Shown here: positions 6,901-9,900 of the stretch, piece by piece | Position numbering within the stretch: the stretch's first letter is position 1 | How the letters are laid out: each line of letters opens with the position of its first letter | Assembly: GCA_964035545.1 (NCBI GenBank) | Contig: OZ037773.1 | Location: 3,625,751-3,689,750, forward strand | Length of the DNA stretch: 64,000 nt | Direction of reading: 5' to 3' | Source of the DNA: Bugula neritina | Taxonomy: Eukaryota > Animalia > Bryozoa | Notes under the pieces: generated by a model | The model's input: the letters and a program-made list of their open reading frames with translations, nothing else | What the model was told of the DNA's origin: nothing | The model's database searches: none | Position numbers and translations under genes: made by a program

Positions 6901-9900
6901 GCACAGTGTGGCCCTAGGCTTAGTCAAAGGTGGGAAAAACTAGTTTAAATGTTCTCAAGTTTATAAAAGGCATTAGCATATTATTTATAATATATGAGTC
7001 CGGAGTCATTCTCTAATTAACCAATCGGCTTCCTTGTAGGTATGACAAACCAGAACGCCTTTCACTTGATGAGACGTGCTGACGACAGCAGTCTACCATG
7101 GCCAGGGATAATGTTTGGACTTACCATATCCAGTGTGTGGTACTGGTGTTCAGATCAGGTATGACTCTACTTTATACGAGTAGCCTAATGTACTTACTCA
7201 AGAAACTTACTTACTGTTAACAGCTGTACATGCCTTAGACATAACTTACCATAAAACACTTACTTTACAGATTTTAGCTTTATAGCTCTCGAACTTTTTC
7301 TTATAACGTCTTGGAGTCAAATTTGATTTGTATCTACAGCAAGTATAAGTTATAAAATTGCTATTTCTATTTAGTTTTGGTTTGACCATTGCTGCAGAAG
7401 TCAAATGGTAGTTACATTGAATACAATTTAAATTGTTTTCAACTATTTTGCCTATTGAGACGTGCTAATCATATTTACAACTCTTTTATTAACAGCGACC
7501 AAACATTCTAGAAAGTAGAGATACACATTTGTATTCTTGTTAGTATTTCCACACGGCTACCTGTGCAGAACTACTGCTGTCTAGGAGAAAAATGAGTATT
7601 CTTATGATCTTTATTACACTATTGTACCTCACTATTTTCTGCAGGTGATTGTACAAAGAGCACTCGCTGCAAAGAACCTAGTGCATGCCAAAGCAGGCAC
7701 AGTGCTTGCAGGTTCCCTCAAGCTGCTTCCTATGTTTATTATGGTATTTCCTGGAATGATATCAAGACTACTTTATCCAGGTATGTCTGACTTGTTTGTG
7801 TTAACATGTGGTACGTCAGTATATGATGTGTCAGCATGTGATGTGTCAGCATGTTATGTGTCAGCATGTTATGTGTCAGTATATGATGTGTCAGCATGTG
7901 ATGTGTCAGTATGTGATGTTTCAGTATATGATGTGCCAGCATGTTATGTGTCAGCATATTATGTGTCAGTATATGATGTGTCAGAGTGTCATGTTTCAGT
8001 ATATGATGTGTCAGCATGTTATGTGTCAGTATATGATGTGTCAGCATGTGATGTGTCAGTATGTGATGTTTCAGTATATGATGTGTCAGTATGTGATGTG
8101 TCAGTATATGATGTGTCAGCATGTGATGTTGACAAATTAATAAAGAGTATTCGATGGAGTCCGAGTATTTTTAAAAATCTACTTCAACTTTACAATATTT
8201 ACTTTTATTACAGAGCTCGTAGCTTGTGCAGATCCTGACAGTTGCAAGGAGATTTGTGGGAACCCTGCAGGATGTACCAACATAGCCTACCCCCTGCTGG
8301 TAGTGAAACTCATGCCAAACGGAGCCAGAGGTCTGATGCTGGCTGTGATGATGTCTGCATTGATGTCTTCACTAACTTCAATATTCAACAGTAGTTCTAC
8401 AATATTTACTATGGACATCTGGAGACGTCTGAGGAAAAACTCATCAGACATGGAGCTCATGATTGTCGGCAGGTGAAGACAGCTCTAATTTATTTTATCC
8501 ACTCATTGTGTAAGATAGCATACAGAGTGAAACATAACTGTAAATCTTGCTATATTTTAATTTAATTTCCTAAATATTCTTATGGCCAAAAGTTTATTAC
8601 TACAATGGATACGATTTGATATGTAGTCTTGATTGCTGGACCAATGAGCTAATGAAAGAAATGTTATTGCTATTTTTAGAGTTTTTGTGTTAGCGATTGT
8701 AGCAGTCAGTATAGCCTGGATTCCAATAATACAGAACATATCAGAGTTGTTTCACTACATACAAGGCATCACCTCCTTTCTCGCACCGCCAGTCTGCGCT
8801 GTCTACGTACTTGGTATTCTCTGGAAGCGAATCAACGAACAGGTATACTATATGCAAAAGCTTTATTATTTAATTCTAAGCACTATGGTTTCAGTGTGAT
8901 TTTAGTCATAATTTGCCATTTTACTCATTGATGGAATTATTTTGGTAAAATCTATTTTCTTATCTGGTTATTGTTATGATTTATAAAATTAACATTTAGT
9001 TGCAGCAACAACAAAATTTTAGTAGCTCAAGTTATTTTAATTTCTTAAAGAATTTTGGTTCAAGACACAAAAAAATGCATTATTTGTCATCTAAACCACA
9101 TGCTTTTCTCAATTTCTCCCTCACTTCAAAATTAAACAGCTCATCAATTACTTAAAATTGAACCTGTTATAAAGATGATGGCTTTATTTTTCAGGGTGCA
9201 TTTTGGGGGCTCATGGTTGGCCTAGTTGTTGGAATGGTCAGGTTTATATGGGAATTCAGCTATGGACCAGCGCCCCCTTGTGGTGAGGAAGATACTCGAC
9301 ACCCTCTGATCGCCAACGTCCACTACCTCCATTTTGGCATTCTGCTGTTTGGAATTGTTGTCATAGTAACCATCGTCATCAGCTTCCTCACTAAGCCAAT
9401 AGACGACAAGCATGTGAGTTCATTTCAATCGGCTCTAAGTTTCTAGAATGAAAAATAATTGCCCCCACCGGGAATTGAACCCGAGACCTCCGGCTTGCAA
9501 GCAAGTGTGCTAACCATTACACCACGGGGACATCTAGGTAAACACAACACTACATACCACTCAGTTCTCTGAACTCCACTGGCCTATCTACTACTCCTTA
9601 AGTCTTCAGGCTCCCCTAGCTACTCAACTCTCTTGAAGTACTACTACACTTCACTAAATGCCGAAATAGCTTGTAAAATAATTTTGCCCCCACTGGGAAT
9701 TGAACCCGAGACCTCTGGCTTGCAAGCAAGTGTGCTAACCATTACACCACGGGGACGACTGGGTAAACACATGACTACATAGAATAAGATGTGATAGGAA
9801 GTAGAAAAATAGTATTTTGAGTAGAGAAATGTGTCTGTAATTGAAATCTTTTGAACCAGATTTCAGGCAACTCTCGTTTTCATCTCCCTTGATCAGAAAA

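Follow-up and report, generated by a model that had tools for sequence, protein, structure and literature searches.

Long terminal repeat (LTR) retrotransposons are known to start their minus-strand DNA in three ways: from the 3' end of a host tRNA, from an internal cut in the initiator tRNA (tRNA-iMet), or, in Tf1, by self-priming, where the primer donor is the element's own transcript. In copia and Ty5 elements the primer-binding site (PBS) pairs with the anticodon stem-loop region of tRNA-iMet and the primer is about 39 nt long; the PBSs of Helenus and TRIMp3 match tRNA 3' ends in animals or the anticodon loop in fungi, and the target-site duplications (TSDs) of animal Helenus are of 4 bp (Kojima 2024, PMC10886601). 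The present analysis concerns a stretch of 64,000 nt from the bryozoan Bugula neritina (assembly GCA_964035545.1, contig OZ037773.1, positions 3,625,751 to 3,689,750 of the forward strand; hereafter the window), which houses a terminal-repeat retrotransposon in miniature (TRIM) of the Helenus/TRIMp3 kind, with LTRs that bear an RNA polymerase III (Pol III)-type tRNA-like promoter. Its 5' LTR is followed directly by a 12-mer complementary to the 5' terminus of tRNA-Phe. We consider it quite probable that this 12-mer is a genuine PBS for the 5'-terminal 12 nt of tRNA-Phe, that the tRNA is cut after U12, and that the TRIM is mobilised in trans by a resident autonomous lineage using the same site.

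The TRIM is 331 bp long (9779-9449, minus strand of the window), and comprises direct repeats of 108 and 106 nt, 92–93% identical, around an internal part of 117 nt. On the minus strand the 5' LTR (9779-9672) ends ..ATTATTTTACA, and the 12-mer AGCTATTTCGGC (9671-9660) follows with zero spacing. A preliminary description of this DNA had placed the junction here, at 9672/9671, and had seen no TGG-type PBS on either strand; both points are confirmed, with no such site adjoining either LTR of the TRIM. The same description took the 12 nt to be the exact complement of nt 1–12 of tRNA-Phe(GAA), on the supposition that the host tRNA begins GCCGAAATAGCT, as indeed it does. Five tRNA-Phe(GAA) genes were found in the 216-Mb host genome, all with the start GCCGAAATAGCTCAG, and AGCTATTTCGGC complements nt 1–12 exactly in every one. 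Nucleotide 13 of the tRNA (C) stands opposite the terminal A of the LTR, so that pairing ends at 12. The 14-mer CAAGCTATTTCGGC, consisting of CA plus the site, occurs 103 times exactly in the genome, against none for the reversed control pattern and about 1.6 expected in random sequence. A search of the same genome gave at least 1341 candidate copies of the TRIM; 30 that were aligned have the same ends and are flanked by 5-bp target duplications of varying sequence. The preliminary description had staked its reading on the conservation of both the 12-mer and its zero spacing throughout the family, and both are kept: the 12-mer is exact in 18 of the 30 aligned copies and abuts the LTR every time.

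For other LTRs ending ..CA and followed by the 12-mer, the genome was examined with a pattern search that excluded the LTR end of the TRIM. In B. neritina the site is borne by three autonomous gag-pol families. Element A (L044:679-4985) is 4307 bp long, with 271-bp LTRs that are 100% identical and the TSD CTTGT; element B (L046/L047) is 5152 bp long, with 445-bp LTRs, likewise 100% identical, and the TSD TTTAT; each has the 12-mer at its LTR junction. Family C, with at least 11 intact copies, has the 12-mer after ..TATTACA. No TGG-type site lies between LTR and gag in A, B or C, and the 14-mer is found 0.7–1.8 kb upstream of every intact Pol copy listed. The Pol proteins of the three are 41–53% identical, and neither their LTRs nor the sequences that follow the site are related. 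In elements A and B the Gag has a CCHC knuckle, and the Pol comprises protease (PR), reverse transcriptase (RT), DUF7047, RNase H (RH; RVT_3/RNase_H type) and integrase (IN). The lineage has the PR-RT-RNase H-IN order of Ty3/gypsy (Metaviridae) with an RNase H of cellular/retroviral type, which matches RVT_3/RNase_H, is preceded by the connection-like DUF7047, and comes without PF17917/PF17919. In profile matches to PDB structures, the best solved relative of its integrase is that of mouse mammary tumour virus (MMTV; E 2e-18, against 8e-10 for Ty3), and its RT has a weaker match to the RT of human immunodeficiency virus type 1 (HIV-1; E about 1e-5). Contigs from four presumed RNA runs, belonging to four studies, cover element A from end to end; they show no transcript starts, ends or primers.

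The lineage extends beyond this genome. Relatives of the element A Pol number in the hundreds; most lie on contigs of about 4 kb in metagenomes and run assemblies, and the one host named is another bryozoan, Watersipora subatra. One Watersipora copy (L133) is intact, with 232-bp LTRs that are 100% identical, and reads ..CAGCACA, then AGCTATTTCGGC, then ATT-ATG; a second (L050) has no 3' LTR within the locus. Among 82 related loci, mostly metagenomic, 50 have the motif CA-AGCTA-NNNN-GGC on the sense strand and none has it on the antisense strand. An open reading frame for gag starts 0–43 nt after the site in 44 of the 50 loci with the motif, and the site adjoins the LTR wherever a related locus has both LTRs. 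Across these loci information content peaks over ACA and the 12 nt, lies at background on both sides, and falls sharply at +13, which is the point where the tRNA 5' end would leave nothing further to pair. No tRNA genes were found inside the metagenomic loci. The preliminary description had proposed a search of autonomous elements for CA followed by the same 12-mer; such elements do exist, in the form of three families in this genome, one Watersipora element and many metagenomic ones. As a separate observation, many of the metagenomic contigs of about 4 kb (L061, L062, L070, L075, L076, L083, L101, L110, L111 and others) share some 90–150 nt at both ends; they are most simply explained as circles produced in assembly from a single LTR and the internal region, and could also reflect one-LTR circles.

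Variation in the site tracks the sequence of tRNA-Phe. The only variable positions are 6–9 of the site, opposite nt 4–7 in the variable part of the tRNA acceptor stem, and the parts facing GCC (nt 1–3) and UAGCU (nt 8–12) are constant across the related loci. When viral and prokaryote-labelled contigs were scanned for GCC-NNNN-TAGCTCAGTTGGGAGAGCG, tRNA-Phe(GAA) genes were recovered, among whose 5' ends are GCCTAGATAGCT, GCCGCGATAGCT, GCCGTGATAGCT and GCCGAAATAGCT. Four of the seven Phe-type PBS variants are the complements of the first 12 nt of a real tRNA-Phe(GAA), where 0.7 would be expected by chance (hypergeometric p = 0.002), and those four account for 37 of 45 distinct contexts. In the sister elements L098 and L125 the site instead complements nt 1–12 of lysine tRNAs, tRNA-Lys(CUU) and tRNA-Lys(UUU), in their published mammalian sequences. 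On a quick maximum-likelihood tree of Pol, from which family C was left out, the PBS variants are polyphyletic: A and B fall in the two deep halves of the tree and both have the TTTC variant of their host, and their nearest relatives elsewhere have TCGC or TCCC. Other variants of CA-AGCTA-NNNN-GGC, those without TTTC, are scattered in the B. neritina genome and none is recurrent. The pattern behaves as though the PBS were re-copied from the host primer in each cycle, by likeness to the correction of retroviral PBSs. Some contigs (L161/L171 and L213, binned as Gracilimonas and Denitrobaculum) contain tandem clusters of eukaryote-type tRNA genes, in which Phe, Gly, Gln, His, Val, Pro and Met repeat every 3738 bp; these are probably eukaryotic DNA mis-binned into bacterial metagenome-assembled genomes.

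Other explanations of the site have to be weighed against these results. The one that survives best, unlikely as we judge it, is that the 12-mer is a conserved cis signal for packaging, dimerisation or the binding of nucleocapsid or integrase, that priming takes another route, and that the match to tRNA-Phe is mimicry or a relic. In its favour, the ACA before the site is also invariant, so that integrase-type constraints do act in the neighbourhood. However, the site abuts exactly on the LTR boundary, the position that a minus-strand primer sets by its 3' end; there is no alternative PBS in the few to 43 nt preceding gag; and a signal that does not act by pairing is not expected to vary solely at acceptor-stem positions, or to equal real tRNA-Phe 5' ends. 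There is a smaller chance that the site pairs with the 3' end of another small host RNA, one ending ...GCCGAAAUAGCU. The link to tRNA-Phe is one of sequence complementarity, and intact tRNA-Phe lacks, at nt 12, the free 3' end that a primer requires. No other small RNA ending in this way is known, though, and the constant GCC and UAGCU with variable nt 4–7 form the pattern of tRNA-Phe orthologues, with exact matches to tRNA-Phe genes from other organisms; any such RNA would most simply be a fragment of tRNA-Phe, which leads back to the hypothesis preferred here.

Self-priming of the Tf1/sushi type, in which the element's transcript would fold back so that its own 5' end pairs with the site and is cleaved, appears very improbable. 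The Tf1 group is similar in having a short site, of 11 nt in Tf1 where it is 12 nt here, and in lacking a TGG-type PBS, but at least four unrelated LTRs share the one site, which a self-encoded primer would not predict, and the best match to its complement in the LTRs of the TRIM, A, B and L049 has 5 mismatches in 12, the same as in shuffled LTRs. The preliminary description had already considered priming by the predicted Pol III start of the element to be unsupported, and we agree, since no LTR contains the complement of the site: the tRNA-like RNA of the LTR itself, with the start GTCCCCGTGG, does not pair with the site, and the best match anywhere in the LTR again has 5 mismatches in 12, at the level of shuffled sequence. 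Chance resemblance without function, which might be entertained for a 12-nt match noticed after the fact, is ruled out by the excess of genomic matches over the control, by conservation of the site across families so divergent in Pol, and by its conservation in other hosts and metagenome samples without an antisense match.

Priming by the 5' terminus of tRNA-Phe, the reading that we favour, might proceed as follows. The 12-mer in the element RNA would pair with the 5' acceptor strand of tRNA-Phe, with U8 and A9, and with the first three bases of the D stem. With help from nucleocapsid, the acceptor and D stems would open and give way to a 12-bp intermolecular helix, and since this duplex amounts to -18.7 kcal/mol and the two stems to about -14.7 kcal/mol, its energy can pay for their opening. 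Cleavage of the tRNA between U12 and C13 would fall to the RNase H of the mobilising element, as happens in Tf1 on its own RNA, or to a host nuclease, and the resulting 12-nt RNA (GCCGAAAUAGCU) would prime the minus strand at the last base of U5. In plus-strand strong-stop synthesis the primer would then be copied, with run-off at the tRNA 5' end, so that the conserved site would be exactly 12 nt, just as run-off at the mRNA 5' end fixes 11 nt in Tf1. Pairing of the site with nt 1–12 of tRNA-Phe is well supported; cleavage at 12/13, the enzyme responsible for it and mobilisation of the TRIM in trans are what we infer. The proposal of the preliminary description, that reverse transcription is primed by a 5' fragment of tRNA-Phe or by cleaved tRNA-Phe, is accordingly supported, and the 3'-OH at U12 would be made by the element RNase H or come with a host-made fragment.

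Several points tell against this scheme. No primer, strong-stop DNA or 12-nt tRNA-Phe fragment has been observed, the run data being assembled contigs without molecule ends, and a D-stem cut after nt 12 is, to our knowledge, no known tRNA processing site. The variants GGGA, GAGG and GTAA are without a tRNA-Phe match in the small sample searched. The matching of element to host is for this genome only, the finding in Watersipora being of the PBS. In the TRIM itself, a TTTT run separates the tRNA-like promoter from the PBS.

The TRIM encodes nothing, and would borrow Gag, RT-RNase H and integrase from the resident gag-pol elements of 4.3–5.2 kb that use the same site. That it is probably this compact lineage that mobilises it follows from the shared PBS, the TGT..ACA ends, the 5-bp duplications, the hairpin with a G-rich polypurine tract (PPT) and the existence of chimeric copies. 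The hairpin, of 5–7 bp, lies directly upstream of the G-rich PPT across the lineage (9555-9580 of the window, minus strand; L044:4690-4714; L046/L047; L058; L133). Its stems are TGATCT/AGATCA in A and many relatives, GCTTC/GAAGC in B, AGCAGCG/CGCTGCT in L058 and AGTTC/GAACT in the TRIM, where the stem is intact in 26 of the 27 copies scored. Since the hairpin is kept with differing stems, it suggests a structure-selected signal for plus-strand priming or for RNase H. The chimeras L039, L040 and L048 (719-1065 and 4510-4652; genome G000, C5 at 8.19 Mb and 8.36 Mb) have an A-type LTR and the PBS joined to the first ~85 nt of the TRIM internal region, and in L048 the 3' internal part and LTR of the TRIM follow 3.4 kb further on. 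They look like products of template switching between co-packaged A and TRIM RNAs. The features of the copy in the window are collected in Table 1.

Table 1. Features of the TRIM in the window, in order along the sense (minus) strand
Feature	Position in window	Strand	Evidence
5' target-site duplication TTCTA	9780..9784	-	same 5 nt after the 3' LTR; 5-bp duplications in other copies too
5' LTR, 108 nt, TGTAG...TTTTACA	9672..9779	-	direct repeat 92–93% identical to 9449-9554; boundaries common to 30 genomic copies
tRNA-like segment with A and B boxes in 5' LTR	9685..9756	-	ARAGORN; Rfam tRNA 40.2 bits against a gathering score of 29
Primer-binding site AGCTATTTCGGC, complementary to tRNA-Phe nt 1–12	9660..9671	-	this 12-mer also follows the LTR end in autonomous families A, B and C
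Non-coding internal domain	9571..9659	-	alignment of 30 copies; apart from the PBS, no similarity to autonomous element A
Small hairpin AGTTC-AGA-GAACT and G-rich polypurine-like tract adjoining 3' LTR	9555..9580	-	architecture common to autonomous relatives, stem sequences different
3' LTR, 106 nt, TGTAG...TTTTTCA	9449..9554	-	direct repeat of the 5' LTR
tRNA-like segment in 3' LTR	9460..9531	-	Rfam tRNA 43.1 bits; ARAGORN
3' target-site duplication TTCTA	9444..9448	-	matches the 5' duplication

The two LTRs are identical to each other in 2 of the 30 aligned copies of the TRIM, and the B box reads GGTTCGATTCC in most copies. A run of TTTT or TTTTT stands at the extreme end of each LTR (9672-9682 and 9449-9459), between the tRNA-like promoter and the PBS; because the first run precedes the PBS, a Pol III transcript of the TRIM must read through it in order to contain the site. 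The LTR ends vary among copies between TTTTACA and TTTTTCA. The 7 nt that overlap the PBS and lie 3' of it are CCTTTAG in most of the copies L002-L030, and CATTTAG in the copy in the window (9660-9654). CCTTTAG is complementary to nt 40–46 of tRNA-Phe (CUAAAGG), and is not present in families A, B and C; it may make a further contact with the primer tRNA, or be due to chance, which we estimate at roughly 2%. Elsewhere in the window, 7737-8171 consists of about 29 tandem copies of a 15-bp unit.

The preliminary description had called this mode of priming one not known to be described, and the literature searched agrees with it: no account of a PBS matching a tRNA 5' terminus was found in the full-text literature, outside which most subscription journals lie, so that absence is not proof. 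The literature matches for the 12-mer itself were tRNA-Phe probes, and neither DUF7047 nor the variant tRNA 5' ends led to a description of such a PBS; a 5' tRNA-derived fragment (tRF) that resembles an ordinary PBS has been reported (PMC11962134). The wider claim we hold with a little more caution, as likely: that there is a fourth mode of minus-strand priming, from the first 12 nt of tRNA-Phe or occasionally of tRNA-Lys, lineage-wide, with Tf1-like cleavage acting in trans, and used also by a parasitic TRIM. To the established ways of starting the minus strand, such a lineage-wide PBS for the tRNA-Phe 5' end would add a fourth, and it would imply that RNase H or some host activity can cut a tRNA after nt 12. 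If true, it would provide a plausible evolutionary bridge between tRNA priming and self-priming, and it predicts that 5' tRNA fragments, and not 3' tRFs alone, can feed or inhibit retroelements. The lineage has been seen in two animal genomes, that of the window and that of Watersipora, and in many metagenome samples. Annotation tools that seek TGG-type PBSs may miss or misorient the lineage and its TRIMs, and the motif CA-AGCTA-NNNN-GGC upstream of gag identifies them.

Comparison with known systems brings out what is shared and what is not. Like Helenus and TRIMp3, the TRIM is a non-coding element of less than 1 kb and high copy number, with two short LTRs that each contain tRNA-like A and B boxes, with a PBS and a PPT at the ends of its internal part, and with a tRNA-like part that is not the primer; it differs from them in its PBS for nt 1–12 of tRNA-Phe, in its 5-bp TSDs, and in its likely partner, which is a different, retrovirus-like compact lineage. 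That lineage in turn shares with Ty3/gypsy a CCHC Gag, the PR-RT-RH-IN order, TG..CA LTRs and 5-bp TSDs, but has RVT_3/RNase_H behind DUF7047 in place of PF17917/PF17919, its best solved relatives are retroviral, and it is only 4.3–5.2 kb long. As to the primer, the site resembles that of a canonical retroviral, Ty1 or Ty3 PBS in lying directly after U5, in depending on a host tRNA and in following the sequence of that tRNA, whereas the canonical PBS of about 18 nt starts with TGG and pairs with the tRNA 3' end; here the opposite end of the tRNA would be used, over 12 nt, and endonucleolytic cleavage would be needed. The need to cut a tRNA and the disuse of its CCA end are shared with copia and Ty5, but complementarity is here only to nt 1–12 of tRNA-Phe. 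In mode there is a parallel with Tf1, Tf2 and sushi elements, in which a PBS of 11–12 nt is likewise paired with an RNA 5' terminus, a cut is needed to give a 3'-OH and the length is set by run-off; the difference is that the donor here is a host tRNA sequence, the complement of the site being present in no LTR.

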